Virus record (IMG/VR): IMGVR_UViG_3300040801_002079
Location: 248,001-312,000 of that record
Reading direction: 5' to 3' (one strand)
Length of the DNA: 64,000 nt
In this document: one piece after another, positions 11,759 to 64,000 of the stretch
How positions within the stretch are numbered: the stretch's first letter is position 1
Layout of the letters: the number at the start of each line of letters is the position of its first letter
Position numbers and translations under genes: made by a program
The notes under the pieces: generated by a model
What the model was told of the DNA's origin: nothing
What the model saw: only the letters and a program-made list of their open reading frames with translations
Database searches by the model: none

Positions 11759-11767
11759 ATCCCTATT

Positions 11768-12924: not shown

Positions 12925-12949
12925 CCTCTAATAATTATCGTTGTATTCA

Positions 12950-13003
12950 TATTTATAAGTACAAAAAAATGGTGATTTTACCGTTAAGATATAATCATAA
13001 ATA
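12950..13003. promoter_or_regulatory. Back-to-back late promoters at the main strand switch
   Basis: Minus TATAAATA 12950-12957 (gp26-like) and plus CATAAATA 12996-13003 (baseplate cluster). Confidence 0.75.
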
Positions 13004-13045
13004 CATATACGCAATGATTTATATATTGTCAGGAGATAGATTATC

Positions 13046-13696: not shown

Positions 13697-13702
13697 ACGA
13701 TC

Positions 13703-17667: not shown

Positions 17668-17693
17668 TAAATATATACCAGAGGTTATTAATT

Positions 17694-18158: not shown

Positions 18159-18160
18159 TC

Positions 18161-18556: not shown

Positions 18557-18599
18557 ATAAAGAAATAAATAGAAATATACGATTAGGGATTAAACTATT

Positions 18600-27500: not shown

Positions 27501-30500
27501 CAGGCTACAGCGCACATTCCGAGCATTGAGCGGTCAAACGATTGATACGGTATGGCGGAGACACTATCCAGATAAACGAGTTGTCGAGTCTCACCCCAAT
27601 CTAGTCAGTATATCCGGCATACAAAACATGATTGATTTTGTAACGGGATATGAAGATTACTTATATGATCGCGGATTTGTATGTAAAAATCCAGATGGGG
27701 ATAATTATGACCTATCTACTGGAAGAACTAATGATTGGCAGTTTGAATTAGAGAAATTTATATCTAACCTTTATAGGCTAAGAAGTAGAAGACAAGAAGA
27801 GCCATTGGAATATAAAGTATCAGTTAATAGTGTGGACAATAACATAACACTATTGGATGGTGCATACTCAAGTTGGCAGAATGGTACGCGGGTTGTAATT
27901 GTGGAAGGAGATGATGAGGCCCAATTACCCCAACCATTTGATTCAACACTATCGAACGCATTCCCCTATTACATTATACGAAGCGCTCATGATAATATTT
28001 TCCAGTTAGCCTATACCCATTATGATGCAATGAGGGGCAATGCCATTGATATCATAGATGATGGAGTGGGGGATATAAGGCTTAAAGTCTTTAAGAGATT
28101 GACAAATGCTCCAGAATTAGAAATAAACCCACTAAAATCATCAATATGGGTTAAAAATGATCAGGGTGTTATGAATGATGTATTTCATGGCACAAACCTT
28201 GATGTTGTCACATCACAAGCTGTATTTGATAACAATAAAAGGGAAATGAACAGCAATGAAATAATTGTATTCAGACAGGATCATGAAAATAAAATAACAA
28301 TAACAAATGAATTACGCAATTATACAATAGATGCTAAGGTTCCCATCAACAAATATATGGCGGGAATGAATTTATATTATGATGGATATGAGCATATCAT
28401 AACATTTGAAGAATATTCAACCGACGACTCTTTGATATACGATCCATTCTTGGGCGTATCAACACTTAACTTCAGAATCGAATTTAACCGACAGAATGAT
28501 ACTACCTTTAGGCCAAATGTTGGTGGATACACATTACTTGATAATGAATTATTGCAAAATCTAGAGTCCTCTGTAAATGACGTTAGAATGATGTACGACA
28601 CACATAAGACACTGGAAACTAAGCAGTTAACAGAATATGTTCGCAAATCATTAGGATTCGATGAAAAGGATTATATGAATGACATTTCATTAAATCCTAA
28701 AACACAGTTCCTATTTTATAAAGGAATGATTCAGAATAAGGGTACAAATTTTGCCGTAGATGCATTCACAAATCAAACGCTATTTGAAACTGCCGAAATC
28801 GATGAATTCTGGGCGTATAAGCTTGGAGAATTTGGTGGAGCAAGAGAGCTTAGTTATCCTGAAATGATACTAACCCCCGATGATGTTGTTCGCAGAGAAC
28901 TAAGATTGGAGTTCTTATTGCCGGATGAAGGAAGTCTACATTCGTCATTTGTTCCGGTTAGAATAACTGATCCGGAAAGATGGTGGGACCAGCCAGATCA
29001 ACTACAAACAATAAAACCATATGACGGATTCTGGTTCAATATTGATGTTCTTGAGCAAATCGGAAATTCGGAATACAACATAGAATACATTAATGGTAAT
29101 TACATCTTAGATTTGGGTAAGATTGTTAACTCTGTAATTTTGACACATTACAATCCCGAAAGTGAACTCGTTGAACAACTGCAAGAGAATTTACATTTCG
29201 TCTATATGAGTAATAGGGCGATAAAGTTCATAAGAGATGCGGATGATGTTCCCGTTGCAGATTTGCCCCCAGACTCTGCGTTAAAATATCAAGACCTAAC
29301 TGTTAATGTGGTAACATATCACTATGATGCCATAAACCCAGCTAAAGTTATTGACAGAGACTATGACCTTGGTAATTATGATGATACGGGAATTGATGCT
29401 AAGGCCGCAAAAGTTATAACGGAAGTGCCGGTTTGGAATCCAGCCTTTGGACAATATTCACATATTGTAGATTTTGTTACTAATATAAAGAGTAGCGAAG
29501 ACCAAGCAAACTATACCAATTATCCAGACGGCACTTCCCCCGATTTAACACCATGGCTATTTGACATGGTTGGTACCGTATGGATGGACAATAGTATAGA
29601 GCATTATGTTCCATATTATGACAAAACTGCCATGCCTAATTTCGATAAAAGAATCTTCTTATGGGGCACATTGGCTGAATGGGGCGATATAGCACTATAT
29701 GAGTGGTCACAATCACTACTTCCACCAGAAGAATGGGACGGAGACGGTTCCCCTAGAACACTAATCTATAAAAATGATGCAGCAGACCCTGTAAATGATG
29801 ATCCCATTTGGGTTGAAAATCCAGACCCCGATGTGCATGAAGATTATATTGCAGGCTTGGTTACTCCAACCAATAGCACATCCTTAACTGGTGAAATAGA
29901 GGCATATATAAATGGTGAATATGATCAAACCCTAACTATAAACACCCCGGATGATTTTGTAACATATGCTCTAACTTTGCCGCAAGAGGTTCATGTTCAT
30001 TTGATGCATCGGGGGTATGTCCCAACAGAGGATGATCTAAGTGATAATCTATATAAGTATGATACGCCATACTGCAAAGAGACTAGGTATAATTCGGATA
30101 GTAATGAACCATATGATGTATATTATTTCTGGGTAAGAAACCGTGAAACAAAGAGAGAATTTCAGAATGGCAGCGTAACAGTAGTTGAAGCGGAAAAGAT
30201 ATCTAAGAATATGGATTCGCCGTATATGATTATTGAGGGATTGCGTAGCAATGAATTTGGTTATGGAATAATTTACGGCGCAACATTTGATCCATTTGAA
30301 TATGATGTTCCAAATAGATATACTCACGCAATAATAAAAGGACTAAGAGGAACTGTTAAGGGACATTCTCGCTATACGTTAAGGTTCACACGAGACTTTA
30401 ACTTGAGAGATGAGATAGATGATGATCTAAATCTAAAAAATGTCCACGAGGAATGGAAGTTATTTAGAGAAAAGCAGTTTTCCAAGATTGATATCGATTT

Positions 30501-40978: not shown

Positions 40979-41593
40979 ATGAAAAATCCGTTCTTAATCT
41001 TTGAGAATTTTATATCTCCACTTCAGTGTGAAGATATAATTATAGGCAATAACAACACCTTTCCTAATCTTGATAAACACAATAAGGTGCAGCCACTCTA
41101 TTCTCGCAATGGGCTGGCTGAGACGCGAATATTACCTCAAGTTAAAGCAGAAGTTATTCCACGAGTTGAAGAATATTACGATGTGGAGGTTAAAGGCATT
41201 ACCCCGTTTATGATGGAATGGTATGCCGCAGGATACGAAGGAACCAATAAACCTCGTTGCGAAAACTCCATATATCTAAATGGAAAATGGCAAAGATCAA
41301 ACAATAATGATTTTACTGCCGTTATTTTCTTAAACGATTATAATGATGAAACTCCATTTGATGATGAGTATGAAGTTTTTGGTGGACAATTAGAGTTTAT
41401 AACACACGGATTTAGCTTCAACCCCCAACGTGGAACATTGATTATATTCCCCGGTGCCCCTAATTTCATAAACAATACAGCAGAAGTTAAGGCAGGAGAA
41501 TTAACCCAAATACGATTCCATATTGCAACCCACGAACTTTTTGTGTATGATATGGAAAAATTCAAAGGCAACTTTGAAACATGGTTTAAATAA
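40979..41593 (+). CDS. 2OG-Fe(II) oxygenase-fold protein (P4H-like), metal ligands apparently lost
   Basis: FENFISP..C, FTAVIFLND, GGQLEF, PQRGTLIIFP; HxD position reads RCE and distal His reads N. Confidence 0.75.
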   Translation: MKNPFLIFENFISPLQCEDIIIGNNNTFPNLDKHNKVQPLYSRNGLAETRILPQVKAEVIPRVEEYYDVEVKGITPFMMEWYAAGYEGTNKPRCENSIYLNGKWQRSNNNDFTAVIFLNDYNDETPFDDEYEVFGGQLEFITHGFSFNPQRGTLIIFPGAPNFINNTAEVKAGELTQIRFHIATHELFVYDMEKFKGNFETWFK

Positions 41594-48363: not shown

Positions 48364-48371
48364 TATAAATA
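48364..48371 (+). promoter_or_regulatory. Late promoter ahead of the 48412-55623 gene run
   Basis: TATAAATA; an opposing AATAAATA at 48388-48395 would serve the Nudix gene. Confidence 0.7.
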
Positions 48372-48411: not shown

Positions 48412-48777
48412 ATGGAAACGAGATTTATTAAGAAGCTTGACTTAAATCGAAACGGAGTTGGCATTGAAGTCACGGTTGTTAACGCAATTGATGTGGGAAC
48501 AGACGAGGATGGCAAAACACAGTATGAAATCTGGTTCATTAAAAATGATGAACTTGATCCAATCGACAAGCAGCGTTTGCTTGAAGTGTTGCAGAAGAGT
48601 GCTCGTGTTAATGATTTTCAGCCTCTCTACGAGACCTTAGCTGACGTAACGTTAGGAAACGGTCAAAATGCGTTGGATTATTTCCATCAGTATGTTAAGG
48701 TTCTATATCCTAGTGGTGTCATTCAGCGTCCGAAGCTGGGTAGAACTGCTATGACAAATAGACCTAACTTTGTATAA
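48412..48777 (+). CDS. Hypothetical protein (121 aa)
   Basis: AAGGAG RBS; LDPIDKQRL...TLGNGQNALDYFHQYVKV. Confidence 0.75.
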   Translation: METRFIKKLDLNRNGVGIEVTVVNAIDVGTDEDGKTQYEIWFIKNDELDPIDKQRLLEVLQKSARVNDFQPLYETLADVTLGNGQNALDYFHQYVKVLYPSGVIQRPKLGRTAMTNRPNFV

Positions 48778-48835
48778 AAATCCTAGCTAGGCTCACCCCT
48801 AGCTAGGTAGTATTTCAAATAATAAGGAGAAAGAT

Positions 48836-50209
48836 ATGGAAAACACCATATTCGTGCAAATTGCAAGTTACAAAGACCCCGAACTAATACCCACCTTAAA
48901 TGATTTAATTGAAAACGCGAAATATCCTGAGAATATCCATGTAGGAATCTCATGGCAACATGATGATAATGAGTCCCTAGAAGATTTCATGGACGCAGGA
49001 TTTGATGTACTGGGCTTCAAAGAGGACTTTTCTGACATTGAAGATTATCAGAAGATTACAGCGTTTGTTAATATGTCCAAGGGTGGAACCAAGCTCTCTG
49101 TTTTAGATATTGATTATATGAATACTAACGGGGCTTGCTGGGCAAGACATAAAATTCAGCAAATGTATTCCGGTGAAAAGTATACTTTGCAGCTTGATTC
49201 ACATCATCGCTTTGTAGAAGGTTGGGATGAATTGGCTGTAAATATGCTTGAGAGTCTACGTTCTGATGAATGTCCCAAGCCTTTATTGACCGCATATATA
49301 CCATCTTTTGATCCTGAAAATGATCCAGCATCAAGAATTCATGTACCATGGAAAATGGATTTTGATAGATTCATTCCAGAAGGTGCTGTATTTTTCAGAC
49401 CATCATCCATAGATGATTGGGAAGAAAGAGATCGGCCCATGCCTGCACGTTTTTTCTCCGCGCACTTTACATTTGCTGACGGGAAGTTTGCTGAAGAGGT
49501 CCAGCATGATCCCAATTATTTTTTCCATGGAGAGGAAATATCATTAGCTGTAAGGGCGTTTACGCATGGGTACGATCTCTTTCATCCTCATCGTGTTATT
49601 GCATGGCATGAGTACACCCGAAAGGGACGAACCAAAGTATGGGATGATCACACTACCCCTGAAAAAAATAAGGGTAAAGTCGAGCTTGACTGGGTTGAGA
49701 GAAACAATCTATGCCATAAGCGAAACCGAATATTGTTTGGAATGGATGGAGAAGACCCGAATCAAATTGATTTTGGAAAGTATGGTTTCGGCAATGTTAG
49801 AACTTTACGAGAGTATGAAGAATATGCTGGTATCAGTTTTGAACACAGAGGAGTCCAGCAGGAAACTCTTGATAAAATGGAACCACCGAACAATCTTCCG
49901 TATGAAACAGAAGAAGAATGGAAAGACACATTCTGTCGATCAAATGACGTAAGAATTTTATTCCACCGAGATGAATTGGGTGAGATAAAGGATGATTACG
50001 ATTTCTTCTATGTCGGCGCACACGATGAAGACTATGACGAAATTTATCGGGAAGATTTAACTGAGGCCAAAATCAAGCAATACCTGCAAAACGAATGGTT
50101 TGATTTTAGACTAATATTTTTAGCAAATCGTATACCTAAAACTTTCACTGTTTGGCCTCACAGCAAATCTGATGGATGGGGTGAACGTATTGTAAAAGAT
50201 GTGGAGTAA
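48836..50209 (+). CDS. GT60-family (Gnt1/Gnt2-like) polypeptide N-acetylglucosaminyltransferase
   Basis: IFVQIASYKDPEL, GACWARH, LQLDSHHRF..GWD, FHGEEISLAVRAFTHGYDLFHP, WHEY.R: GT60/PF11397 motifs. Confidence 0.85.
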   Translation: MENTIFVQIASYKDPELIPTLNDLIENAKYPENIHVGISWQHDDNESLEDFMDAGFDVLGFKEDFSDIEDYQKITAFVNMSKGGTKLSVLDIDYMNTNGACWARHKIQQMYSGEKYTLQLDSHHRFVEGWDELAVNMLESLRSDECPKPLLTAYIPSFDPENDPASRIHVPWKMDFDRFIPEGAVFFRPSSIDDWEERDRPMPARFFSAHFTFADGKFAEEVQHDPNYFFHGEEISLAVRAFTHGYDLFHPHRVIAWHEYTRKGRTKVWDDHTTPEKNKGKVELDWVERNNLCHKRNRILFGMDGEDPNQIDFGKYGFGNVRTLREYEEYAGISFEHRGVQQETLDKMEPPNNLPYETEEEWKDTFCRSNDVRILFHRDELGEIKDDYDFFYVGAHDEDYDEIYREDLTEAKIKQYLQNEWFDFRLIFLANRIPKTFTVWPHSKSDGWGERIVKDVE

Positions 50210-50212
50210 ATT

Positions 50213-52525
50213 ATGTCTGACGGTATTATTTTATCAGCATATGGCTCCCATAATGCTACAATCTCCATGTACCACAACGGTGAATACCACGTTGTAGAAT
50301 TAGAGCGGTGGTTAAATAAGAAGAACTCCGGGTTAGCAGGGTATCTTCCAGCAAAGTATCCACAAAAGGTATTTGATGATGTTATGGAATACCTGTTCGA
50401 AAGAGCAGGTACCCGTAAAGTCGATCTTTTCCTATCCAATTATTTCACTAAGATTGATTTCACTGGATACGATATAAAGGAATTCAGAAGATTTGATCAT
50501 CACCAGTCTCACGCCGCTGGAGCATATTATCAGTCTGATTTTGAAAAGTCTTTAATTTTCACCTATGATGGTGGAGGAAACGGATCATTCTTTAACGTAT
50601 ATATTTCTGAAAGTAGAGATACCGGCCCAAAATTGATTGATAGGTTCGATCTTGATCTGGGCTTCCCTTACATGGTTCTAGCCGACCACTTATCTGATAT
50701 CAGAAAAGAACCTCTAAACATTGGAAATTTGGTTTATGCTGGAAAGTTAATGGGGCTTTGTGCTTATGGTACCGTTCGAGATGAATGGATGCCCCACTTC
50801 ATGAATTTCTATAAAAGGTTCCGGTATGGCGGAGATGCATTTAAGGGCGGTGCTGAAGTGCGAATTTCAGCAACAAACGAACTGTTCAGTGCAATAGGTG
50901 TTAATGATGTTGATTTCGAACTGGAAACCACGCGGTTTGACGGCGAATTTTCATGGGATATTGCGGCAACGTCACAGGCAGCGTTCGAGGAAGTATTCCT
51001 TGAATTAGCAATGCCTTACATTAACAAGTATAGCCCGGAAGAATATCCCATATGCCTTTCAGGTGGATGCGCTCTTAATGTTCTACTCAATGCCCGATTA
51101 TTAAAGATGGTGGGTAAAAACAATATTTTTGTGCCACCAAATACAAATGATTGCGGCATAGCCGTTGGTGGATTGCTAGATTACATAAAGCCGCGTGAAG
51201 TTGTGGATTTGACGTATTCTGGATTGCCCATAATGGACGAAAGAGAGTACACTGCACTAATAGAAGATAATCCTGTAAAGGCTATAGATGAAATCACCTT
51301 AGATGACTTATCAACCCTACTAGCTGAGAATTATATTGTAGGAGTGGTCAGGGGAAATTCTGAGCATGGTCCTAGAGCGCTGGGTAATCGTAGTATATTG
51401 TGTAATCCAGTGGGTGACATGAAGGATGTCCTTAATAAGAAGGTGAAAGACCGTGAATGGTATCGCCCATTTGCCCCACTGGTAAGATATGAGGATGTAT
51501 CCACATATTTTGATTTCGATTCAGAAAGTCGCCACATGACGTTTGTTGCAGATGTTAGGGATACTGAGAAGTTTCCTGCCATCACGCACGTTGACGGCAC
51601 CGGACGGTTGCAGACAGTTACCCGCGAACAAAATGAGTTCATATATGATTTAATAACACAGTTTAAAGAAAAGGCTGGGCATGGTGTTATTCTCAATACA
51701 TCCTTTAATGTTAACGGTAAACCAATTCTTACCAGACTAAGTGATGCCTTTAAGATTTTAATGGATACCGAATTGGATTGTGTATATTATGATGGAAAAA
51801 TAATTTTCAAAAGTAATAGAGAAAATGAATTTAATAATCTTTTAAGGTATGAGCCGGTGTCCATGGATCACACAAACTTCACCGTGTATGTTGACGCTTT
51901 TACAAACAGTGAAGATGAATTCAAAGCACTTCTGCCAAAGTTGGATGAGCTTCAGATGCGCTATAAAAAATTAATGATAGTTCTTAATGAACGTCATATG
52001 CATTTATTTACAGTTAAATCAGATGCCACTATAATACCCAGAGGGCAGAGGCAAATGTTTTATAGGGACATGATTGGTGGCGCAGGCTTTCCAAATAAAG
52101 AAGTTGATTTCATTAAGCCTCTGTGGTTTAAGGACATAATTGAAAACAACGCTTTGCAGTCAGATTATCACATTGTTGTCGATTTAACCTTTGAAAAATC
52201 CTTTGAAAATTTCAAAGAGTTTATGACTAAATATATGGGCGAAGCAGATGTCGCAAATAGTATCATTACTGACACTGAAGACTTTTCAACAATAACAGTG
52301 AAAGAGTTCTTATCTAAGCGCAGTAATTACGTAGAAACCAATGATAGATATCCTAGATTCGGGTTATATGCCGGATATTCAGAACTAATGTCTTGGTTTT
52401 TAAGAACATACGAAGGAAACCTACGCTACCATATGCTAAATGGGCGAGGAGAATCCAGTAGAGACTATTTAGCGATTCAATATTTAGAAAACGAAGGTAA
52501 ATTTTTAATTTTGGAACAACAATGA
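50213..52525 (+). CDS. O-carbamoyltransferase (CmcH/NodU family) with extra C-terminal domain
   Basis: SHNA, ELER, HHQSHAA, DGGG, GKLMGL, SGGCALNV, NDCG, EHGPRALGNRS, REWYRPFAP, HVDGTGRLQTV, LNTSFN. Confidence 0.93.
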   Translation: MSDGIILSAYGSHNATISMYHNGEYHVVELERWLNKKNSGLAGYLPAKYPQKVFDDVMEYLFERAGTRKVDLFLSNYFTKIDFTGYDIKEFRRFDHHQSHAAGAYYQSDFEKSLIFTYDGGGNGSFFNVYISESRDTGPKLIDRFDLDLGFPYMVLADHLSDIRKEPLNIGNLVYAGKLMGLCAYGTVRDEWMPHFMNFYKRFRYGGDAFKGGAEVRISATNELFSAIGVNDVDFELETTRFDGEFSWDIAATSQAAFEEVFLELAMPYINKYSPEEYPICLSGGCALNVLLNARLLKMVGKNNIFVPPNTNDCGIAVGGLLDYIKPREVVDLTYSGLPIMDEREYTALIEDNPVKAIDEITLDDLSTLLAENYIVGVVRGNSEHGPRALGNRSILCNPVGDMKDVLNKKVKDREWYRPFAPLVRYEDVSTYFDFDSESRHMTFVADVRDTEKFPAITHVDGTGRLQTVTREQNEFIYDLITQFKEKAGHGVILNTSFNVNGKPILTRLSDAFKILMDTELDCVYYDGKIIFKSNRENEFNNLLRYEPVSMDHTNFTVYVDAFTNSEDEFKALLPKLDELQMRYKKLMIVLNERHMHLFTVKSDATIIPRGQRQMFYRDMIGGAGFPNKEVDFIKPLWFKDIIENNALQSDYHIVVDLTFEKSFENFKEFMTKYMGEADVANSIITDTEDFSTITVKEFLSKRSNYVETNDRYPRFGLYAGYSELMSWFLRTYEGNLRYHMLNGRGESSRDYLAIQYLENEGKFLILEQQ

Positions 52526-53415
52526 GTGCACATTTTGTAACTTGCATATATAATGGATTAAATCAAAGTGAACTGTGTGGCAGGCTAAATCGTGAACGCC
52601 CGTATAAGTATTCACTTTCAACCATAGCAAAAACCAATAATAAGATTATATGTTATACTTCCCCGGATGAACTGAGTGGAATGCGATCAGATTTTCCAAG
52701 GGAGCGGTTTCCTAATATCGAATTACTCCCATGGAGCCTATATGCAATGACATTCCATAAGCGGGTAAATTCTGTACGCAACAAGGACGCACATATATAC
52801 AGGGAGTCCCCAGACTGGAGAGATCGCTGTGTTGAAATTATGTGGGGCAAATTCTTATTCATAAAAGATTCAATTGTAAACAATCAAGAATCTGAATATG
52901 TATACTGGATTGATGCGGGCATTTCACATCCGGGAATAATTCATAGCAGGTTTAACCCACACTATGATCATAATATTGGGTTTGTTCGGGATTTGGATAA
53001 ATCAACCTACCCCACCACATTTAAAAACGACTTGATATTTGACGAACAGTTTATGGATAGCCTGATTAACTATACGGGTCCCGATAAGATATTGAACGTT
53101 GCTGCAAAGGGGCCACAGCATCCCAGATTAAGCTACGATAATAAATTCATTGGTTCAGTTATAGGTGGAATCTTTGGTGGTCACAGGGATTTAATGGAAA
53201 AATATTGCAATGAGGTTACAGCGCAGTTTGAAGAATATCTTTATAATAAGGAACAACTGTGCAAAGAAGAGCAGATTATGACCGAGATACTTTCAGAAGG
53301 AACTCTACCAATTAAGACATTCATATTTGATACATGGTACCATCCTGACTGGGAAGATCGATATAATGAGTCTCAGGTTAGTTTTTGCGACTTCTTTGAT
53401 GAGATTAGAAAATGA
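52522..53415 (+). CDS. HtrL/YibB-like glycosyltransferase
   Basis: HFVTCIY, IMWGKFLF, YVYWIDAG, IGGIFGG, KEEQIMT. Confidence 0.7.
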   Translation: MSAHFVTCIYNGLNQSELCGRLNRERPYKYSLSTIAKTNNKIICYTSPDELSGMRSDFPRERFPNIELLPWSLYAMTFHKRVNSVRNKDAHIYRESPDWRDRCVEIMWGKFLFIKDSIVNNQESEYVYWIDAGISHPGIIHSRFNPHYDHNIGFVRDLDKSTYPTTFKNDLIFDEQFMDSLINYTGPDKILNVAAKGPQHPRLSYDNKFIGSVIGGIFGGHRDLMEKYCNEVTAQFEEYLYNKEQLCKEEQIMTEILSEGTLPIKTFIFDTWYHPDWEDRYNESQVSFCDFFDEIRK

Positions 53416-55067
53416 AAAATCAACTAACATTAGTTACAGCATTATTTGACTTGGGCAGAGAGCATCTACCCGAGGGGTTCAGTAGGGGGTTTGATCATTA
53501 TCTGGAATGTTTTGAAAAGCTCTTACAGGTCGATTACCCGATGGTTATATTTGTTGATAAGGAATTAAATGATTGGGTAAATGAACGTAGACAGGGTAAA
53601 CAAACACATATTGTAAATAAATCAAGAGAAGATTTAGAGTCATTTCCTTTTTACACTGAAGTTCAAGAAATAAGAACAAGCCAAGACTGGATCAACAGGG
53701 CTGGGTGGATTCCAGATAGCCCGCAAGCTAAGCTCCCATTATATAATCCCGTTGTAATGAGTAAGCAGTTCTTTATGAATGATGCAACACTTATGAATAT
53801 TTTTAATACGAAATATTTCATGTGGATCGATGCTGGCATATCGAATACCATAGGTGATCCAAAGGGATACATTGATGAAGAATTTGGTGATAAGATATCC
53901 AAAGTATTCAGTAACAACAAGATGCATTATCTTTGCTTCCCCTATGAGCCTGCTGCTGAAGTTCATGGATTTGAAAAAGACGCAATGTTTCGCTATGCGG
54001 GACAGGAAACAAAACATGTAGCAAGAGGCGGTATATTCGGTGGCAGCATAGATGCTATTAACATAATAAACGAATCATATTATGCTGAGTTGTCAGAGAC
54101 TATACGATCAGGGTATATGGGAACAGAGGAGAGTATATTCACGATTCTCACATACAAGCACAAGCATCTATGCACTTGTCATATGATTGAGTCTGATGGA
54201 CTCGTGTATAGATTTTTGGAAAAGATAAAGAACATGAAAAAGGATTCATATAACTCATTATTGGCAGTATATGTATTAACCTTTAATTTACCTAAACAAT
54301 TTGCATTATGGGCTGAAAAATTTGAGAAGAACTTAGAAAATAATCTTAGGGATGAAACAGTACGCTATGTAATAAACAACTCCACTGACCCTAGCGTGGA
54401 AGCCGAATACAGCGAACTGTTTAAAAAGTATGGGTTTGAAGAACTTAAGTTTGATAATATTGGGATATGTGGAGCTAGACAGGTAGCAGCAGAACATTTC
54501 GAAGAAAATAATCACAAGTATATGATTTTCTTTGAAGATGATATGTTACTATGTGGATCAGAGGATGAAGGAAAATATTGTAAAAATGGATTCAGAAAAT
54601 ATTTTCCAGATATTATTAGCAAATCTATGTCGATAATGGAAAGTGAATCATTGGACTATTTCAAGCTTTGCTTCTCAGAATTTTACGGTGATAACCATGA
54701 TAACTGGGCATGGTACAATGTCCCACAGGAAAAAAAGGACAAGTGGTTTTTAACAAATAAAAACTCAAGTGACCCAAAGAAGGTTAGAATTCATTACACC
54801 AGTGCATTTAGAGGGGTACCATATGCTGTGGGCGAGTACCACTATTGCAATTGGCCCCTGCTATTTAACAGAGAAGGCAACAGAAAGATATTTCTGGATA
54901 CCAAGTTTGAACATAAGTTTGAACAAACATGGATGAGTTTTGTAATGGAACTTATTGTGGATAAAAAAATTAAACCCGGATGTTTGTTGGGCAGTGCCAT
55001 AACACATCATAGGGAGTTTCACTATAGTAAAGAAATTAGGCGAGAAAATGAACACTACACCAATTAA
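53412..55067 (+). CDS. HtrL/YibB-like glycosyltransferase fused to a GT-A (GT2-like) domain
   Basis: TLVTALFDLGR, YNPVVMSK.F, YFMWIDAG, RGGIFGG, GTEESIF; second half NIGICGAR, FFEDDM. Confidence 0.78.
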   Translation: MKNQLTLVTALFDLGREHLPEGFSRGFDHYLECFEKLLQVDYPMVIFVDKELNDWVNERRQGKQTHIVNKSREDLESFPFYTEVQEIRTSQDWINRAGWIPDSPQAKLPLYNPVVMSKQFFMNDATLMNIFNTKYFMWIDAGISNTIGDPKGYIDEEFGDKISKVFSNNKMHYLCFPYEPAAEVHGFEKDAMFRYAGQETKHVARGGIFGGSIDAINIINESYYAELSETIRSGYMGTEESIFTILTYKHKHLCTCHMIESDGLVYRFLEKIKNMKKDSYNSLLAVYVLTFNLPKQFALWAEKFEKNLENNLRDETVRYVINNSTDPSVEAEYSELFKKYGFEELKFDNIGICGARQVAAEHFEENNHKYMIFFEDDMLLCGSEDEGKYCKNGFRKYFPDIISKSMSIMESESLDYFKLCFSEFYGDNHDNWAWYNVPQEKKDKWFLTNKNSSDPKKVRIHYTSAFRGVPYAVGEYHYCNWPLLFNREGNRKIFLDTKFEHKFEQTWMSFVMELIVDKKIKPGCLLGSAITHHREFHYSKEIRRENEHYTN

Positions 55068-55623
55068 AAAGTATTTTATTATCAGTCTTCCCCGGACGGG
55101 AACAAAAAGCTTATGTAACATGGCTCACACGCTTGGGTTTAAATTTAAGCATGTTCCATCAGTTACGCTGCCTCGCCTACTCAATGAAAACGAAATACAG
55201 GTATTTGCTGATACGCCAATATTTACCCCCTCAACATTCACCGAACTTTGCAATAATGAAAATCATTATTTTATCTACATAAAGCGAGACATGGAAAGCT
55301 GGGTTGATTCTCTGGAGCGGGTTAATTTACATAATAACTATATGGCTCTCCATACAGGAAAAGTGCCAGAGAATTGTATGAACAAAATGGACCGGGAATG
55401 TCTAGAAGAGCTATTTAATAATCAAGATTATTCCACTGAGCTAGCTAAAGAGCGGTACAGATGGCACTATAATAAAGTGACTCACATTATTCCAGAGGAC
55501 AGGCTTCTTGTGTATAGCTTCGATATGGGATGGGAACCTCTAGCTGCGTTCATGGAAAAAGAGCCTCCCGTGGCAGATGTGCCACAAATCAACAAAAACA
55601 CAATGTTTGATCCTATTGTTTAG
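55048..55623 (+). CDS. Sulfotransferase-family P-loop protein
   Basis: SLPRTGTKSL (5'-PSB loop), DTP, RD.ESWVDS (3'-PB), PEDRLLV, GWEPL..F. Confidence 0.8.
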   Translation: MNTTPIKKYFIISLPRTGTKSLCNMAHTLGFKFKHVPSVTLPRLLNENEIQVFADTPIFTPSTFTELCNNENHYFIYIKRDMESWVDSLERVNLHNNYMALHTGKVPENCMNKMDRECLEELFNNQDYSTELAKERYRWHYNKVTHIIPEDRLLVYSFDMGWEPLAAFMEKEPPVADVPQINKNTMFDPIV

Positions 55624-56792
55624 ATTACACTAACATCAGAATCTGATGTGTTGCAAACAGATATAGTAAGTGTGTAAGTGATACTGATAGCCACATCCTT
55701 TGCTTTAGGAATTGGAGTAAAGATGATATGTGTCAGCAAACGCTCCCTTTCATTTTCGGGTATAATAGGATCATTTGCAACACCGGCAACCTGACCTGTT
55801 ATACTAGATACATTGCAATTCGCACAAACCCCATCAGTAACAATGTTACCAAAGTCGGCAGGAGCGCTGTCATTACATCCTATAACTACGGAAGAATTCG
55901 CGCCAGTGTCTTTACTCTGGAATGTGAGTAGCCCGTAAGATTGCTTACCAATAATGGTTGGATATGTCCCCCCGGAGTTATCTGTAATGAATACATATAC
56001 AAATTCATTAATGGGGTCTCCTCCTGAAAGCCAACTGCCGGTATTAATGCCTTCACAAATATCACCATAGGTAATCTGTCCTGTCGGTCCAGTGCCCGCA
56101 GATGGCGTTAAAAGTGTTGCACTATAAGACAAGCCATCTACTGTTAAATCTATCGTTAGGGTTGAGTTCAGGGGCACGGAAGATACATCGGAAGCCACCT
56201 TATCATTCACAAATATACTAGCATACCCCGGAGAAGAAACAGCGGGTAAGCCGGGACTATAAAGCCCAATTTCATCAAATGTGAAATCTTCGTCCCCTGT
56301 TGGTGAAAGAATGGACAAATCCTGACCATTCGGTTCATTTTCATTCAGAAATACCTTTATAACAACGTTCGATTTAATACCTGCTTCCTGAGAAGTTACT
56401 CCCGCTCCAATCGGATCAGATAGGGGATCACTTCCACCCCCGGTTCTAACAGTATTGGGTCCAGCAGAGCCTGTATCGATGCCTAAATCGGTATTAGCTT
56501 CATCCACTACCTCAGAATAGGTTTCATTATATAGACGAGACTCCCATCCATCTATTCTGCCATCGTTTGGGGGGTTAAAGATTAAATTATCACCAACATC
56601 TTTAAAGGTTCCACCGTTGCCGAAAGCCATTCGGTGAATGATTGAGTTTGGCTCATTAGCTAAAGCTCGTGCCAAAATTCGTGACATATTTTGTGGGTGT
56701 ATCGCGTTTGACTTATCAACGAGAACTTTATTATTGGTTTCATCACGAATAAGAACATTCGTTTCTATTTGTACATTCATACCGTCTTTCAT
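55620..56792 (-). CDS. Virion structural protein (baseplate/tail-collar-like)
   Basis: NAIHPQNMS..LA.AL, MAFGNGG, FDEIGLYS, LLTHIIF.PI.K; two TATAAATA upstream (56811, 56827). Confidence 0.65.
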   Translation of the reverse strand: MKDGMNVQIETNVLIRDETNNKVLVDKSNAIHPQNMSRILARALANEPNSIIHRMAFGNGGTFKDVGDNLIFNPPNDGRIDGWESRLYNETYSEVVDEANTDLGIDTGSAGPNTVRTGGGSDPLSDPIGAGVTSQEAGIKSNVVIKVFLNENEPNGQDLSILSPTGDEDFTFDEIGLYSPGLPAVSSPGYASIFVNDKVASDVSSVPLNSTLTIDLTVDGLSYSATLLTPSAGTGPTGQITYGDICEGINTGSWLSGGDPINEFVYVFITDNSGGTYPTIIGKQSYGLLTFQSKDTGANSSVVIGCNDSAPADFGNIVTDGVCANCNVSSITGQVAGVANDPIIPENERERLLTHIIFTPIPKAKDVAISITYTLTISVCNTSDSDVSVI

Positions 56793-58945: not shown

Positions 58946-61900
58946 TTATCGCGGAGCTAAACCGGTAATTGTTATGGTATCAATACCGTAATCGTTATTC
59001 CATATTGTTCCCGTGGTTCCCAACGTAACCTTTATTCTTACGCGAGTATTAACATGGTTAGCAGAACTCAAATCAACATTTCTGTAAGACCATATTTGTG
59101 CTCCGCCTGTGACAACCTTATCCGGATCGGACGGACCACCAAATTCTGGGCCAACATCAACCCATCCAGCGCCACCCTCATTTAGTTGAACCTGACAGGT
59201 TGCATTGTTATCATTACCGCGTTGGTTGGTATAGAACTCAATATAAAAATCACTGTATTGTGTGCTGTCCAGTGTTGTATTAAATTCCATAAAGAATTCA
59301 TCACCGCCCACTGTGGGGCTTGATGATTCTGTGTATACATATCCTTCTGGGCTTCCACCCTGACCCGATGTTGGCCCCACACCACTTGAAGCCGTATCGT
59401 TACTATCCCATTTCCACCGCCTATTTGCTCCTCCCGGAGTTGCTGTTGTTCCAAGTGGGTCTGTCCATGTAAATTCGGTAACATCACCCGTAGTCGATGA
59501 TGGGAATGAATATGGTCCATATACATCCTCAACTGGTGGACCAACAAGGGAATCATAATTTGTAATAGTTAATTCATCGTGATCACTGTTAACTATATGG
59601 AAAATTGGCGTAACTTTGGAATCGTAATCCGTTATTGTAATGGTATCATGATCTGATAAAATATCCACCGGATCAGCAGGAGTTCTATACAACATTATGG
59701 TATTACACTCATCAGCCAAGGCTGGTCCACTCCAATCATAATCCATACCAAATGTTGAATCATCATGGTTCCATCCACCCAATTGCGCCAAATGAATAAT
59801 TTTATAATATTGAGGAATATTAACTTGGCTAGTTGAATATTGATAATTTCTATCATATGTTTCATTTAGGGCTTTATCATGATACACCACTTCTGTAATA
59901 TAACCATTCAATAGTCCTCCATTAGGATCGGTTCCGATATATTTTAACCTAAAGTCGGCCTCTGGCTCCCCTGATGACGGATTAAGTGCAAATCGGAAAG
60001 ACGTATACCCGCTAGTTACATATTTGTTCCTATCAGCATCCACGCCATCTATGAATAGCGATATTATTCCATCTCCTTCATGCATGACCGTAATATTGAA
60101 CCACCTATAATATCCCATCGTTATATCAATGCCCGGAGATGTAAAATTGGTGTAAGTAATATCATTAGTTTCAAACTTGGTTCTTATTCCAAATGTTACA
60201 TCCTGTCCTATGCCATCACCTTCTGCATACACCTCAAATTCATCTCCACCATCTCCAAATTCGGAACTAAAGATTGGATGCTTCATACTTAGATCAAAAG
60301 TATTGGGACGTAGGTAGACCATTGCACTAAGTGTGAACTCTTCTGTTATTGTTCTGGTTATGGGATTAGTTAGAGTTATACTTCCGTTGGACCCAAAGCA
60401 CCCGAGCGATCCAACTTTGTGGAATCCAAAGTCGAGACTATGCTTAGGCTTGCTTGTACCAGCAGCGATTAAATCATTTGACCCGATTTGATCTGAAATT
60501 ACATCATCGCTATCCATTCTCCAGTAATGCGTGGGATTATCATACTTAACTAAGTATGGGTAATCATATTCTCTGGAAGATACAGTTGTATCCCATCCGG
60601 TAAACCCAGTCGGCGGGGTATATTTGAACTCAGCAGCGTTTGTTCTGAATATAGTTCTAGTCTGTCGTGGGCCAACTCCTGTCCCACTATACTCACCTGT
60701 AACGATGTAAATGTAATCTGACATGTCAAGCGCTGAAACGTCCGTTAATGTGAATAATGGATCAGTTCCAGTGGAAGGATCACCCTGTATCCAGTTTCCA
60801 TTTATTGAAATCCACATGCCTCTATTATCAATATCAACAGCTATTCCAAGTGTTCCAGTAAGCGGGGCATCAGATGTTGGGGTTGATATGCCATTAGTAT
60901 ACAACTCCCCTCTGGAATCATACATGTAATGAAATTCTGATTCTCCCAAATAGGTTAATGAGTTTTCAACAGCCAGCAGTCCATATGGAAGTGTATAGTC
61001 TACATAAGATACACCAACCCGGAATCCCGGAGTTTCCACATCACTCTTAGCTATATTAAAGAACAACTCAGCGTAATGTTTCCCACTATTATGTCCTATA
61101 TGGGATGAATATTCATAATCTGGGGTCGTACTAACTTGTGCAAGCATTGCTTGTCGCGCATATCCTCTAAAATCATTGGGTGTAAAGTAATGAGTGTACG
61201 GACTTTGGGTATACACTGGAGTAGCGTAAGCCTGATTAATGTCGGTTACCCAATTTGCATAGCGTGGAGATTTGAATGTGTATTCGGGCTGCGATCCGGG
61301 AAGACCACAATCAAATCGATATAACATATGGGCATCAAAGTTGTAGCCCTCATCAAAATCCATACTATATTTTGGAACATCATCTTCAATAAACCCAGAC
61401 CCAATTGTAAAGATGTATCTACCATCATCCGAAAGAACAAAGTTTGCACCAAACAGATCAGACATGTAACTTTGTATAGGCTCTATATATTTAATAAATT
61501 TATATTCTTGATCAGTATCATCCCAATCAAAAATATCTAGTTTACCGTGGGTTCCGCTTTGCGTGAAATTCTGAAACATCTGAGATGTTACTATCCTATT
61601 TCCATCCCTCGACATCGCCACAAACGTATCATCACTTTCGTCTACATCAAATTCCAGAACTGGATGACTTATCCTGATCCGCTGTACGAATTCCCAATTT
61701 CCCGGAGTTGTTTCTTTAAACACAATTGCACCAGATGCAAAGTATGAGAATGTATCATCCCTAATAGTTTGTCTTGATGCATAATTGAGTACTATAGTTG
61801 ATCCATCTGATGATGCGCCACAATACGAAGTATTATTCCATGGGGTTTTTCCTATATATGTACCATTTGAGGTTTTATATGCGCCAAAATCATCATATAT

Positions 61901-64000
61901 GGTGCTCTTTAATAGCTCCGGATGAGTTAAATCAAGAGAACCTTCATATTCCCATGTCGTGTTACCCACATTATATTTCCAAACTCTTGGAGCTTGCACC
62001 TCAACATTATCATGCATATTGAAAGTTCCGCTTGTCATTATTATGCGAGACCCATCGGGGACAACATAAAAATGTTGCTCAACCGATTCAGTTGCATAAG
62101 ATGACATAGCATCTTCTACAACAAGCGCCTCATCTAGATTCCAAACACTTCCATTTTGACGGAATATTTCATTATCTGCGACTACAACTGAGCCGTCATC
62201 GGAACATGTGATGCCCCTAGCTCTACGATTGCTTGGCTTAACACTAAGCTCCATCTCATCAATTTTTAAATATGTGCCATCAAGCTGATCTTCATATACA
62301 TGGATTTTATGTGGCAGGGGAGAGAAAGTGGTTCCCAAGCTTTCGTATGTGAAAATATATTGACCATTATTTGACATAACTATAGGGCTTGACCCTAATG
62401 TATCGCCATAAAAATAGGTGGTCCAATTATCAGACACATCCTTTTTCATTACCAACAATTTTTCATACGAGTTTTCGTTTACATATGCAGCATATACTGA
62501 TCCCTCAGATGATATAGCAAACTCATCCCCATCAACCATGAAAGTTTGCCCTATATTTTGATCGCCCTCTGTAGACCACGGGGTTTGTACATCTAGTTGG
62601 AACATAATTCCTGAATAATAATTTGATGCTGTATATCCACCAGCCCCGTATATTTTTGTACCACTACTATTCCACGCAGATGGATTTATCCGAGAATATA
62701 ATTCTATGGCATCAGAAGCTTGTGATATCGTATCTATCTCCCACGGGGTTGATAGCGTGTATTGCATTACAATTCCACCTTCAGCCTCTCTAATGGTAAA
62801 TAATTTTGTACCATCCGGCGAGAAGCTTAGAGAGCTAAAATCGTCTGAAGTGTTTATATACTCTCCAAGGGTCCCACTAACATATGATTTTGAATCATAC
62901 GATATAGTCGATAGCTCCCACGGAGTGCTGAGGGTGTATTGATAAATTGTGTCATTTCCAATTCCCGCATAGTATAATTTTGTACCATCCGGCTTAATAT
63001 AAAATCCACCTGAACCAGAGCTTTGGGCTGTAAAATCATAAGTTACTGAATTGTACGTTGCTGTTCTTAAATCCCATGGTGTTGTAAGATCGTATTCATA
63101 TATATCAGCAGCAGTATCAAGTAAGTACATTTTATCGCCTGACGCACTTAACGAAATGTTAATAGCCGATCCACCTTCGGTGAAGAAGAAGCAACCATCA
63201 GTTAAAAACATGGTGCTAACATCACCCGGAGTTGTCAAATCCCCCTGAAGCAATGTATTTCGGGCATTATTATAGTAAACGGATGAGTCATATCCATCGT
63301 ATGTTACATATATTTTACTTTCATCAGATGATACCCCTGCAAAATCTTTAACTGTTAAAGATGATACAGTAGAGCTTGTGCTATCTAATGATATACCATT
63401 TATATCCCATGCGGGAGATATATTGTATTTAAGTAAACTATTTCCCTCAAATGTGTACAGTGTATCTCCGCTAGAGTTAATATCAAGGCCAAGATATGGA
63501 GTATTTCCTGATAAATTTGTATAGTTTCCTGTAAATGTTAATGTTCTAATGTCTCCCGGAGTCCCTGCTTCATATTGAAAAACTGCGCCCGAATCTCCTG
63601 ATATGAAAAAGCGGCTTTGATCATCATTCCAGTAAAATCCATTCAAATCATCTTCAAATGCTGAATGATCAAATACCTCAGCGCCCAAATCAAATGAGTC
63701 AAAAGACCATGCAGAACTTATATCATATTGTAATCCCCGATTAGAACCACCAAAGTAGTAACAATTTGATCCATCGGGGCTAAAATGAATAACTAGTGGG
63801 TAAATTGGGTTATCAGCAGAATAATCATATAGATCGGAATCTAATGTAGCTCCAGTTAAATCCCAAGGAGTTGGCAATGTATAACTGCGGAAATAATATC
63901 CATTGGTAGATTCTGCTAGATATAATTTAGTACCATCAGGTTTAAAGTAAAAAGAAGTGCTAAGCGCCGAGCTTATCGCTGAAACGTCAAGTGATACACT
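58946..64000 (-). CDS. Large multi-domain adhesin / tail fibre, 5' end beyond the right edge
   Basis: Frame stays open from 63877 to 64000 (SVSLDVSAISS...FKPDGTKLY...); propeller repeats F.PDGTKLY/Y.LSTPWD, SPRY-like, LamG-like and MAM-like segments. Confidence 0.8.
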   Translation of the reverse strand, partial: SVSLDVSAISSALSTSFYFKPDGTKLYLAESTNGYYFRSYTLPTPWDLTGATLDSDLYDYSADNPIYPLVIHFSPDGSNCYYFGGSNRGLQYDISSAWSFDSFDLGAEVFDHSAFEDDLNGFYWNDDQSRFFISGDSGAVFQYEAGTPGDIRTLTFTGNYTNLSGNTPYLGLDINSSGDTLYTFEGNSLLKYNISPAWDINGISLDSTSSTVSSLTVKDFAGVSSDESKIYVTYDGYDSSVYYNNARNTLLQGDLTTPGDVSTMFLTDGCFFFTEGGSAINISLSASGDKMYLLDTAADIYEYDLTTPWDLRTATYNSVTYDFTAQSSGSGGFYIKPDGTKLYYAGIGNDTIYQYTLSTPWELSTISYDSKSYVSGTLGEYINTSDDFSSLSFSPDGTKLFTIREAEGGIVMQYTLSTPWEIDTISQASDAIELYSRINPSAWNSSGTKIYGAGGYTASNYYSGIMFQLDVQTPWSTEGDQNIGQTFMVDGDEFAISSEGSVYAAYVNENSYEKLLVMKKDVSDNWTTYFYGDTLGSSPIVMSNNGQYIFTYESLGTTFSPLPHKIHVYEDQLDGTYLKIDEMELSVKPSNRRARGITCSDDGSVVVADNEIFRQNGSVWNLDEALVVEDAMSSYATESVEQHFYVVPDGSRIIMTSGTFNMHDNVEVQAPRVWKYNVGNTTWEYEGSLDLTHPELLKSTIYDDFGAYKTSNGTYIGKTPWNNTSYCGASSDGSTIVLNYASRQTIRDDTFSYFASGAIVFKETTPGNWEFVQRIRISHPVLEFDVDESDDTFVAMSRDGNRIVTSQMFQNFTQSGTHGKLDIFDWDDTDQEYKFIKYIEPIQSYMSDLFGANFVLSDDGRYIFTIGSGFIEDDVPKYSMDFDEGYNFDAHMLYRFDCGLPGSQPEYTFKSPRYANWVTDINQAYATPVYTQSPYTHYFTPNDFRGYARQAMLAQVSTTPDYEYSSHIGHNSGKHYAELFFNIAKSDVETPGFRVGVSYVDYTLPYGLLAVENSLTYLGESEFHYMYDSRGELYTNGISTPTSDAPLTGTLGIAVDIDNRGMWISINGNWIQGDPSTGTDPLFTLTDVSALDMSDYIYIVTGEYSGTGVGPRQTRTIFRTNAAEFKYTPPTGFTGWDTTVSSREYDYPYLVKYDNPTHYWRMDSDDVISDQIGSNDLIAAGTSKPKHSLDFGFHKVGSLGCFGSNGSITLTNPITRTITEEFTLSAMVYLRPNTFDLSMKHPIFSSEFGDGGDEFEVYAEGDGIGQDVTFGIRTKFETNDITYTNFTSPGIDITMGYYRWFNITVMHEGDGIISLFIDGVDADRNKYVTSGYTSFRFALNPSSGEPEADFRLKYIGTDPNGGLLNGYITEVVYHDKALNETYDRNYQYSTSQVNIPQYYKIIHLAQLGGWNHDDSTFGMDYDWSGPALADECNTIMLYRTPADPVDILSDHDTITITDYDSKVTPIFHIVNSDHDELTITNYDSLVGPPVEDVYGPYSFPSSTTGDVTEFTWTDPLGTTATPGGANRRWKWDSNDTASSGVGPTSGQGGSPEGYVYTESSSPTVGGDEFFMEFNTTLDSTQYSDFYIEFYTNQRGNDNNATCQVQLNEGGAGWVDVGPEFGGPSDPDKVVTGGAQIWSYRNVDLSSANHVNTRVRIKVTLGTTGTIWNNDYGIDTITITGLAPR

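Follow-up and report, generated by a model that had tools for sequence, protein, structure and literature searches.

The window analysed here, a stretch of 64,000 nucleotides corresponding to positions 248,001 to 312,000 of IMG/VR record IMGVR_UViG_3300040801_002079, is part of a 317-kb contig that is distantly related to XacN1-like jumbo myoviruses. It contains five adjacent, co-directional genes (48836-55623, + strand, ORF1 to ORF5 below), separated by a 3-nt gap, two 4-nt overlaps and a 20-nt overlap, which encode glycosyltransferases and enzymes of the carbamoyltransferase and sulfotransferase types. The features considered are the following.

21586-31800, + strand: 3404-aa baseplate-associated giant protein, encoded just after the baseplate wedge gene; homologues elsewhere are annotated as virion structural proteins.
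31045-31797, + strand: C-terminal (V-T-P-T-x-T)n tail of the giant protein, candidate glycan acceptor and the only strong T/P-rich stretch in the window.
48364-48371, + strand: TATAAATA, a T4-type late-promoter-like motif upstream of the 121-aa ORF, its function not being shown.
48412-48777, + strand: conserved 121-aa ORF of unknown function.
48782-48807, no strand assigned: perfect 10-bp-stem hairpin between the 121-aa ORF and GT60, possibly an attenuator or RNA-processing site.
48836-50209, + strand (ORF1): GT60-family glycosyltransferase, predicted soluble, the proposed initiating enzyme.
50213-52525, + strand (ORF2): O-carbamoyltransferase of the NodU/CmcH/TobZ type (residues ~1-532), followed by an unassigned C-terminal extension of ~240 aa.
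52522-53415, + strand (ORF3): single-domain HtrL/YibB-like GT-A glycosyltransferase.
53412-55067, + strand (ORF4): dual GT-A glycosyltransferase, with an HtrL-like N-domain and a C-domain carrying an EDD motif.
55048-55623, + strand (ORF5): PAPS-type sulfotransferase (PF17784).
55620-56792, - strand: 390-aa late gene with two TATAAATA motifs upstream, probably encoding a tail or baseplate structural protein, a neighbour of the cassette and not a component of it.

The sequence-only reading of this locus, namely five packed genes of these enzyme classes downstream of a late promoter-like motif, is confirmed, and all its enzyme assignments are right. In the profile searches that it had proposed as a check, ORF1 matches PF11397 (GT60) with an E-value of 1e-78 and 265.7 bits against a cut-off of 21, residues 4-336 covering profile positions 1-351 of 352. 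The D-x-H metal/nucleotide-sugar motif of the GT27/GT60 GT-A fold is present as D121-S122-H123, which is invariant in 43 phage homologues. ORF2 matches Carbam_trans_N (PF02543, E 8e-28, 98 bits) and Carbam_trans_C (PF16861, E 1e-56, 191 bits), that is a Kae1-like N-domain and a YrdC-like C-domain, with PDB hits to TobZ, GdmN and NovN at E 1e-38 to 1e-42 and invariant H96, H97 and H100 of the H-H-x-x-H motif. It belongs to the same superfamily as NodU but is not a NodU orthologue, as it scores 159.7 bits against an equivalog cut-off of 1000 (NF041651). ORF5 matches Sulfotransfer_4 (E 1e-25, 90.8 bits against 22.8), and residues S13, P15, R16, T17, G18 and T19 of its 5'-phosphosulfate-binding P-loop (S-x-P-R-T-G-T) are invariant in 10 homologues.

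The claim that HtrL occurs twice, once fused to a GT-A domain, is also correct. Residues 4-146 of the 551-aa ORF4 protein match HtrL_YibB (PF09612, E 1e-17, 65.1 bits against 24.1), although ORF4 falls below the TIGR02192 equivalog cut-off (90 against 265). The 297-aa ORF3 protein has no Pfam hit, but it is homologous to the HtrL-like N-domain of ORF4 (hhalign probability 99%, E 7e-18). The AlphaFold model of ORF4 (pLDDT 92.7) shows two tandem GT-A domains, each with an acidic nucleotide-sugar motif: D140, in WIDAG, E375 and D377 are invariant, and D376 is at least 90% conserved. Foldseek relates the model to the bifunctional or dual GT-A enzymes LH3, K4CP, COLGALT1 and WbbM (E 1e-10 to 3e-7), but whole-chain TM scores are low (0.2-0.3), so that domain packing differs; whether ORF4 has two distinct transferase activities, or a polymerase activity, was not assayed. 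None of the five proteins has a predicted TM segment.

The total count of the TATAAATA 8-mer in the window is at chance level (11 found, 10 expected), but all 11 copies lie in intergenic gaps, nearly all directly 5' of an ORF on the same strand, including three ahead of tail genes at 36000, 36680 and 38660. The copy at 48364-48371 precedes the 121-aa ORF and not GT60 itself. That this motif drives all five genes is only inferred: the hairpin, which may uncouple the cassette from the late promoter, and an extra ORF intervene, and the motif is found upstream in only 8 of 21 related loci. The 121-aa ORF, which has no Pfam, PHROG or NCBIfam hit, always lies between the NUDIX gene and GT60 in the jumbo clade (28 loci).

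The cassette is not unique to this phage: it is widespread and modular, and also present in bacteria. GT60 and an ORF4-like enzyme, the constant partner of GT60, co-occur in nearly all of 74 viral loci and form a conserved core, with a variable set of extending and decorating enzymes between them, including elsewhere GT34-like, GT10-like and GT1 enzymes and FkbM- or CmcI-type methyltransferases. XacN1-like jumbo myoviruses carry the same cassette in synteny, and in XacN1 and RAS14 it lies four genes from the giant protein.

The VTPT repeat, proposed by the sequence-only reading as an obvious acceptor, is real. It forms the C-terminal 250-254 aa of the 3404-aa protein (48% Thr, 18% Pro, 38 VTPT units). 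An association of GT60 operons with T/P-rich repeats had been put forward in advance as the test of this proposal, its absence counting against it, and we found the association in both directions and in independent lineages. Among 52 dereplicated GT60 loci, 25 have a T/P-rich ORF within 10 kb, 13 of them directly adjacent (within 500 bp), against 0 of 54 GT60-less control loci covering 908 kb (p = 4e-10). Conversely, 9 of 81 loci picked by a TPTx repeat pattern carry GT60 or ORF4, against 0 of 90 loci picked by a collagen, (Gly-Pro-x)5, pattern, both sets totalling 786 kb (p = 9e-4). These results are associations only, the controls are not phylogenetically matched and Pro/Thr linkers are common in general. 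Moreover, 27 of the 52 GT60 loci show no T/P-rich ORF within 10 kb, and in the RNR-linked marine lineage only 2 of 26 GT60 loci do.

Within the giant-protein family, a T/P tail is present in the window, XacN1, Xoo-sp13, RAS14 and locus L482, which lies on the same contig as the GT60 locus L018. Another member, L481, also has a tail, no information being available on its cassette. The tail is absent in RsoM2USA, whose genome has neither GT60 nor ORF4, and in seven uncultured relatives (L483-L489), where no cassette is seen within the flanks. An independent echo is found in cells: in about 26 Burkholderiales genomes, GT60 sits inside a T6SS cluster next to a VgrG spike with a (TP)n or other Pro+Ser/Thr tail, and in other phyla T/P-rich ORFs lie directly upstream of GT60.

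The best reading is a cytoplasmic protein O-glycosylation cassette, which we consider somewhat more likely than not. The interpretation given by the sequence-only reading is partly supported. What our analysis establishes is the identity of the five genes, with a GT60 enzyme, three further GT-A domains, an O-carbamoyltransferase and a sulfotransferase, all predicted soluble, the existence of the GT60-ORF4 core, and its statistical and physical link to genes for proteins with long Thr/Pro repeats; the acceptor, the sugar and the decoration chemistry are inferred, no chemistry being available for this phage or any relative. In this view, GT60 would, late in infection, put a HexNAc, most likely alpha-GlcNAc from host UDP-GlcNAc, on Thr of the roughly 250-aa VTPT tail, as known GT60 enzymes are polypeptide alpha-GlcNAc transferases acting on Thr/Ser of mucin-type domains or on Hyp of Skp1 (PMC8724618); transfer by the phage enzyme was not measured here. 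ORF3 and ORF4 would then extend the glycan by up to three sugars, or by a repeating unit, and the carbamoyltransferase and sulfotransferase would cap its hydroxyls. The result would be a stiff, charged glycan brush at the baseplate periphery, whose role could be adhesion to host polysaccharide, protease or antibody shielding, or spacing, without our data choosing between them. It has to be kept in mind that the proposed acceptor is 17 kb from the cassette in the window. In agreement with this view, virions of XacN1 contain at least two periodate-Schiff (PAS)-positive proteins (PMC5852040), and the idea that these glycosyltransferases modify virion proteins was already raised for XacN1; as the bands were not identified and nothing is known for this uncultured phage, this observation does not settle whether a glycan is bound to a virion protein here.

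Although it cannot be excluded that the enzymes modify another protein target, such as capsid, sheath, the 390-aa neighbour or host proteins, the VTPT tail being merely an unmodified linker, this seems unlikely. This possibility is compatible with the unidentified XacN1 bands, with the many GT60 loci lacking a nearby T/P-rich ORF, and with mycobacteriophages, in which it is the major capsid protein that carries glycans (Freeman et al. 2023, as cited in PMC11256854). The 390-aa protein is tightly linked to the cassette in 22 jumbo-clade loci, but it persists next to the giant protein in relatives without the cassette, so that this linkage is ancestral synteny. The tail/cassette presence-absence pattern and the direct adjacency of T/P-rich ORFs point rather to the repeats.

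The cassette could alternatively build a decorated glycan on a hydroxylated pyrimidine of phage DNA, as in the T-even, RB69 and 5mYOX systems, to evade restriction. In the window it lies between DNA polymerase/exonuclease/NUDIX genes and thyA, and in a second phage lineage among RNR, DnaB, UvsX and polymerase genes, that is where DNA-modifying glycosyltransferases are usually found, phage DNA GT-A enzymes typically neighbouring ThyS or 5mYOX and replication genes. The ORF4 C-domain also has a weak PHROG hit to a T4-type HMC glucosyltransferase (E 1e-5), and poly-glycosylated DNA bases exist (PMC13326640). However, a source of hydroxylated pyrimidine, either a ThyA homologue with N177D, L143D/E or D169N, or a 5mYOX with a C5-methyltransferase, was not found in the 64 kb of the 317-kb genome that were examined. 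The local thyA is, as the sequence-only reading had noted for Asn, a canonical thymidylate synthase, with the catalytic Cys146, Leu143, Asp169 and Asn177 equivalents and a TS-type C-terminus (criteria from PMC13326640); no 5mYOX, TET or C5-methyltransferase was seen near the cassette, and the 2OG-oxygenase-like ORF lacks a metal triad. DNA of XacN1, which has the same cassette, is cut by BssHII, NaeI and SpeI (PMC5852040), an indirect indication that leaves the state of the DNA of this phage undecided. Furthermore, GT60 homologues sit in bacterial chromosomes, including T6SS clusters, where DNA hypermodification is not expected, and this hypothesis does not explain the link to T/P-repeat ORFs. 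Taken with the association and the PAS-positive virion proteins, these results favour protein glycosylation, and DNA modification is considered unlikely, only 64 kb of the 317-kb genome having been examined.

A third alternative, also unlikely, is the remodelling of host LPS, capsule or another lipid- or sugar-linked glycan, for superinfection exclusion or lysis timing, or the synthesis of a Nod-factor-like oligosaccharide. The HtrL/YibB family comes from LPS core loci (NCBIfam 'protein YibB'), NodU-type carbamoylation and sulfation are classic oligosaccharide decorations, the variable middle of the cassette resembles O-antigen cluster diversity, and the dual GT-A fold resembles the K4CP chondroitin polymerase and WbbM. 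Nevertheless, the cassette contains no undecaprenyl-phosphate priming transferase, flippase, polymerase or ABC exporter and no protein with a predicted TM segment, and the position of an initiating enzyme is taken by GT60, whose characterised members act on polypeptides. Neither the T/P-repeat association nor the tail/cassette presence-absence pattern is explained by this hypothesis.

A broader possibility, which is not excluded but remains doubtful, is that GT60-initiated cassettes are a widespread, unrecognised prokaryotic and viral counterpart of mucin-type O-glycosylation, working in the cytoplasm and building variable, methylated, carbamoylated or sulfated glycan brushes on Pro/Thr(Ser) repeat tails. 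Preferred targets would include tip and baseplate proteins of contractile injection machines, namely the jumbo-phage giant baseplate protein and the T6SS VgrG spike, and this would be the first sulfated and carbamoylated protein glycan known on a phage particle. Phage-encoded glycosylation of the phage's own virion has been demonstrated only in mycobacteriophages, where it affects antibody recognition. If the cassette works as proposed, it would extend self-glycosylation to Gram-negative jumbo phages and give Pro/Thr linkers in phage and T6SS proteins a concrete chemistry. It would also place the GT60 family, known experimentally only from protists, in bacteria and their viruses, which bears on the origin of eukaryotic cytoplasmic and mucin-type glycosylation, and provide a tunable, modular enzyme set (GT, methyl, carbamoyl, sulfate) for decorating repeat peptides.

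Compared with phage DNA glycosylation (T4 alpha/beta-GT, RB69/DLP3 arabinosyl-5hoC, 5mYOX-linked GTs), the cassette likewise places phage-encoded GT-A enzymes near thyA and replication genes, but the GT families differ and no modified-base synthase is seen in the 64 kb examined, thyA being canonical. With the Nod-factor enzymes NodU (carbamoyl) and NodH (sulfate), and with TobZ, GdmN and NovN, it shares the carbamoyltransferase fold and motifs and the logic of decorating a GlcNAc-containing glycan with carbamoyl and sulfate, the substrate being unknown here and a relationship of the PF17784 sulfotransferase to NodH not having been examined. As in mycobacteriophage Che8 and relatives (Freeman et al. 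2023, cited in PMC11256854) and in the capsid glycosylation of chlorovirus PBCV-1, a parallel drawn by the XacN1 authors themselves, virus-encoded glycosyltransferases would modify the virus's own structural proteins in the host cytoplasm, but the GT families differ, the proposed target is a repeat tail on a baseplate protein and not the capsid or tail tube, and the cassette is modular, with carbamoyl and sulfate tailoring, and also found in bacterial genomes.

The eukaryotic GT60 polypeptide alpha-GlcNAc transferases (Dictyostelium GntB/modB enzyme, T. cruzi OGNT) and the Skp1 pathway share with the phage enzyme the Pfam/CAZy family and a D-x-H motif; like Gnt1, the phage enzyme is soluble, with no membrane anchor. 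The acceptors, only proposed in the phage, are Thr/Pro-rich repeats, the T. cruzi gp72 domain having very similar sequence, and an initiating GT60 is followed by a two-domain glycosyltransferase, as Gnt1 is by the bifunctional PgtA. The phage setting differs in being prokaryotic and viral, with no Golgi and no evident prolyl hydroxylase, in its partner enzymes, which are HtrL-like GT-A domains and not GT2/GT74, and in its added carbamoyl and sulfate decorating enzymes, and its donor and acceptor are untested. Finally, the cassette of the XacN1-like jumbo phages (XacN1 ORF334-ORF330, Xoo-sp13 gp304-300, RAS14, CM1) is orthologous and syntenic, with 63-67% identity for GT60, 46-48% for the carbamoyltransferase, 31-33% for ORF3 and 50-53% for ORF4. 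The window differs from it by adding a sulfotransferase, by lacking the 246-aa ORF331 homologue, by the 17 kb, instead of four genes, that separate the cassette from the giant protein, and by a far longer T/P tail, of about 250 aa against about 20-60 aa.

The five genes recognised by the sequence-only reading are present, and its observation is thus confirmed. The features of the cassette and of its upstream region are as follows.

48364: TATAAATA, a motif preceding a conserved 121-aa ORF
48782-48807: perfect hairpin with a 10-bp stem, between the 121-aa ORF and GT60
48836-55623 (+): five ORFs, separated by a 3-nt gap, two 4-nt overlaps and a 20-nt overlap
51800-52522 (+): C-terminal extension, of roughly 240 aa, of the carbamoyltransferase

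ORF1 (457 aa) matches PF11397, the GT60 'GlcNAc' transferase family, end to end (E 1e-78), and its D-S-H motif is invariant in 43 homologues. ORF2 (770 aa) carries both carbamoyltransferase domains, resembles TobZ, GdmN and NovN (E about 1e-40) and has an invariant H-H-x-x-H, but scores far below the NodU equivalog cut-off. Its last 240 aa gave no Pfam hit at E < 10 and no PDB profile hit, and are left unassigned; this poorly conserved extension is present only in the jumbo clade, other phage homologues being of about 520-550 aa. ORF3 (297 aa) has no Pfam hit but is homologous to the N-domain of ORF4 (hhalign probability 99%). ORF4 (551 aa) has an HtrL/YibB N-domain and, in a confident AlphaFold model (pLDDT 92.7), shows two tandem GT-A domains, the best structural matches being the dual-GT-A enzymes LH3, K4CP chondroitin polymerase, COLGALT1 and WbbM. 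D140, E375 and D377 of ORF4 are invariant, and D376 is at least 90% conserved. A sequence search of GT60 and of the ORF4 profile against PDB gave, in contrast, nothing useful. Finally, ORF5 (191 aa) is a PF17784 sulfotransferase with an invariant PAPS P-loop, and none of the five proteins has a membrane segment.

The 8-mer TATAAATA occurs in the window at a frequency equal to the chance expectation. All 11 copies (12950, 36000, 36680, 38660, 47201, 47207, 48364, 56811, 56827, 56862 and 58937) are nevertheless intergenic, and nearly all lie directly 5' of an ORF, including tail genes; the copy at 56862 (+) lies about 380 nt ahead of thyA. T4-type late promoters are therefore plausible in this XacN1-like jumbo phage. 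However, the motif lies within 800 bp upstream of GT60 in only 8 of 21 jumbo-clade loci, and late timing of the cassette is thus retained as a tentative proposal. The hairpin separating the 121-aa ORF from GT60 is built from the palindrome-containing arm CCTAGCTAGG and is followed by a weak T-run only, so that its role (terminator, attenuator or processing site) is unclear.

The window is part of IMGVR_UViG_3300040801_002079, a 316.8-kb contig, and encodes T4-like tail, baseplate and replication genes. Its closest cultured relatives are the XacN1-like jumbo myoviruses, with DNA polymerases that are 41-43% identical. XacN1, Xoo-sp13, CM1 and RAS14 carry the same cassette in the same place, after polymerase, exonuclease and NUDIX, but lack the sulfotransferase and have one extra small gene. 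More than 7000 metagenomic homologues of GT60 were found; a tree including the eukaryotic Gnt1 and pp-GlcNAcT enzymes was not built. In 74 viral loci, GT60 is almost always accompanied by an ORF4-like dual GT, whereas the carbamoyltransferase, ORF3 and the sulfotransferase come and go. Two related jumbo-phage contigs each carry two sulfotransferase paralogues in the cassette, one before and one after the ORF4 homologue (15328-15906 and 17553-18122 in contig L009; 15228-15797 and 17388-17981 in contig L012). In other loci, the space between GT60 and ORF4 holds GT34-like, GT10-like and GT1 enzymes and FkbM- or CmcI-type O-methyltransferases. This is the pattern of a glycan-building cassette with a fixed initiator, a fixed partner and variable tailoring.

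To get insights into the target of the cassette, we considered the VTPT repeat that the sequence-only reading had named as acceptor.

31045-31797: VTPT repeat, the last 250-254 aa of a 3404-aa protein encoded right after the baseplate wedge gene

This repeat is real, and it is the only strong T/P-rich stretch in the window. In the same phage assembled from a second sample (L478), the T/P tail is of 235 aa instead of 251 aa while the flanking 400 aa are 100% identical, so that the repeat varies in length between samples. The co-occurrence of GT60 operons with T/P-rich repeats, which the same reading had put forward as a way to probe its proposal, was then examined in four ways.

In the forward direction, after dereplication, 25 of 52 GT60 lineages have an ORF with at least 60% Thr+Pro over 40 aa within 10 kb, and 13 have one within 500 bp of the cassette. 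Among loci anchored on a ribonucleotide reductase, 0 of 54 GT60-less loci (908 kb) have one (Fisher p = 4e-10). In the reverse direction, of 81 viral loci picked only by a (Thr-Pro-Thr-x)4 DNA pattern, 9 have GT60 and/or ORF4 within their short flanks, as compared with none of 90 loci picked by a (Gly-Pro-x)5 pattern and of the same total length (p = 9e-4). These tests, like the two that follow, are correlative; the controls are not phylogenetically matched, about half of the GT60 loci show no repeat within 10 kb, and 10-kb flanks rather than whole IMG/VR and GTDB genomes were surveyed, without phylogeny-corrected statistics. When the T/P-rich neighbour proteins were annotated, only one PA14 domain and one protease-like domain turned up, and phrog_15511 matches the repeat itself; their location in the virion is therefore unproven. 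T/P-rich proteins of relatives (L008, L009, L023 and L040) also occupy a position corresponding to that of a different protein of the window.

58946-63877 (-): 1643-aa protein with no Pfam or PHROG hit

Its N-terminal roughly 470 aa resemble repeated segments in Roseobacter, Lentibacter and Synechococcus phage proteins.

The third comparison was made within the giant-protein family. As a single-sequence search for relatives of the giant protein found only the same phage, a 3-sequence profile was needed. The conserved C-terminal motif is followed by a T/P(S) segment in the window, XacN1, Xoo-sp13, RAS14 and two uncultured relatives, one of which is on the same contig as a GT60 locus. In seven more distant uncultured relatives, which show no cassette in their flanks, the protein stops 4-14 aa after the motif. 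It also stops there in Ralstonia phage RsoM2USA, whose whole genome has neither GT60 nor ORF4.

Fourth, GT60 homologues are common in bacteria (364 loci). In about 26 Burkholderiales genomes (among loci L279-L328), the gene is embedded at a fixed position in a T6SS cluster, and the adjacent VgrG spike ends in a hypervariable Pro+Ser/Thr repeat tail, of the (TP)n, (PSEEP)n or (PDET)n type, with up to about 50 TP units. In one of these loci, L286, GT60 lies at 9974-11377, Rhs at 11282-14704 (-), VgrG at 15078-17567 (-) and TssM at 17637-21290 (-). Literature searches on GT60 in phages and on VgrG with glycosyltransferases found no prior description of these arrangements. In Gemmatimonadota, Vicinamibacterales, Opitutaceae and Saprospiraceae, a T/P-rich ORF lies directly upstream of GT60 followed by ORF4. 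In one Vicinamibacterales genome (L352), this T/P-rich protein (8442-9989, +) starts with a twin-arginine (Tat)-like signal, which hints at glycosylation in the cytoplasm before export of a folded protein.

These results can be set beside published ones. At least two periodate-Schiff-positive virion proteins have been reported in XacN1, and it has been proposed that the GTs of the phage, including the GT60 orthologue, make them (PMC5852040). GT60 enzymes studied so far are polypeptide alpha-GlcNAc transferases, acting on Thr/Ser of mucin-type domains or on Hyp of Skp1, and in the Skp1 pathway a bifunctional two-domain GT follows (PMC8724618). A T. cruzi glycoprotein carries a very similar PTVTPT domain (PMC3630849). 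We also tested whether a Hyp-type route could apply here.

40979-41593 (+): 204-aa ORF, conserved upstream of the DNA polymerase in 27 jumbo-clade loci

This ORF hits a 2OG-Fe(II) oxygenase PHROG (E 8e-7) and, only weakly, PF13640, but it has no conserved HxD...H triad in 21 homologues. It is thus a degenerate or repurposed double-stranded beta-helix, and the link to a prolyl hydroxylase is rejected.

DNA glycosylation is the main alternative, because the cassette lies among replication genes in two lineages and because phage DNA GT-A enzymes are typically found next to ThyS or 5mYOX. Several results go against it. The adjacent thyA has canonical residues at all the positions that distinguish hydroxymethyl- and hydroxy-pyrimidine synthases, and such an activity is rejected on four diagnostic residues and the C-terminus; the remaining roughly 250 kb of the contig were not scanned for 5mYOX, C5-methyltransferase or ThyA paralogues. 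Moreover, the oxygenase-like ORF lacks a metal triad, XacN1 DNA is restriction-sensitive and the family sits in bacterial chromosomes. The synthesis of an envelope glycan would fit the HtrL ancestry, but the cassette lacks any lipid-carrier priming or export gene, and this possibility does not explain the association with the repeats. Although it cannot be excluded that another protein is the target, the 390-aa neighbour of the cassette is not retained as a component or an acceptor: its fold is uninformative, with a weak similarity to FliD D2-D3 and otherwise to uncharacterised phage proteins, and it persists in relatives without the cassette. It is treated as a structural neighbour.

Our results are best accounted for by protein O-glycosylation of T/P repeats, which we consider somewhat more likely than not. 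The interpretation offered by the sequence-only reading is thus supported in part, and is now backed by comparative evidence that could not be drawn from the sequence alone. While the enzyme genes and their association with the repeats rest on the analyses presented here, the initiating sugar, the site, the chain and the decorations are inferred; co-folding of enzyme and peptide was not carried out. Phages that glycosylate their own particles are already known, and this had been anticipated for the present clade by the authors of the XacN1 study. What would distinguish the present system from these is a cassette initiated by GT60, tailored by carbamoyl and sulfate groups, tied to Pro/Thr tails and shared with T6SS loci.
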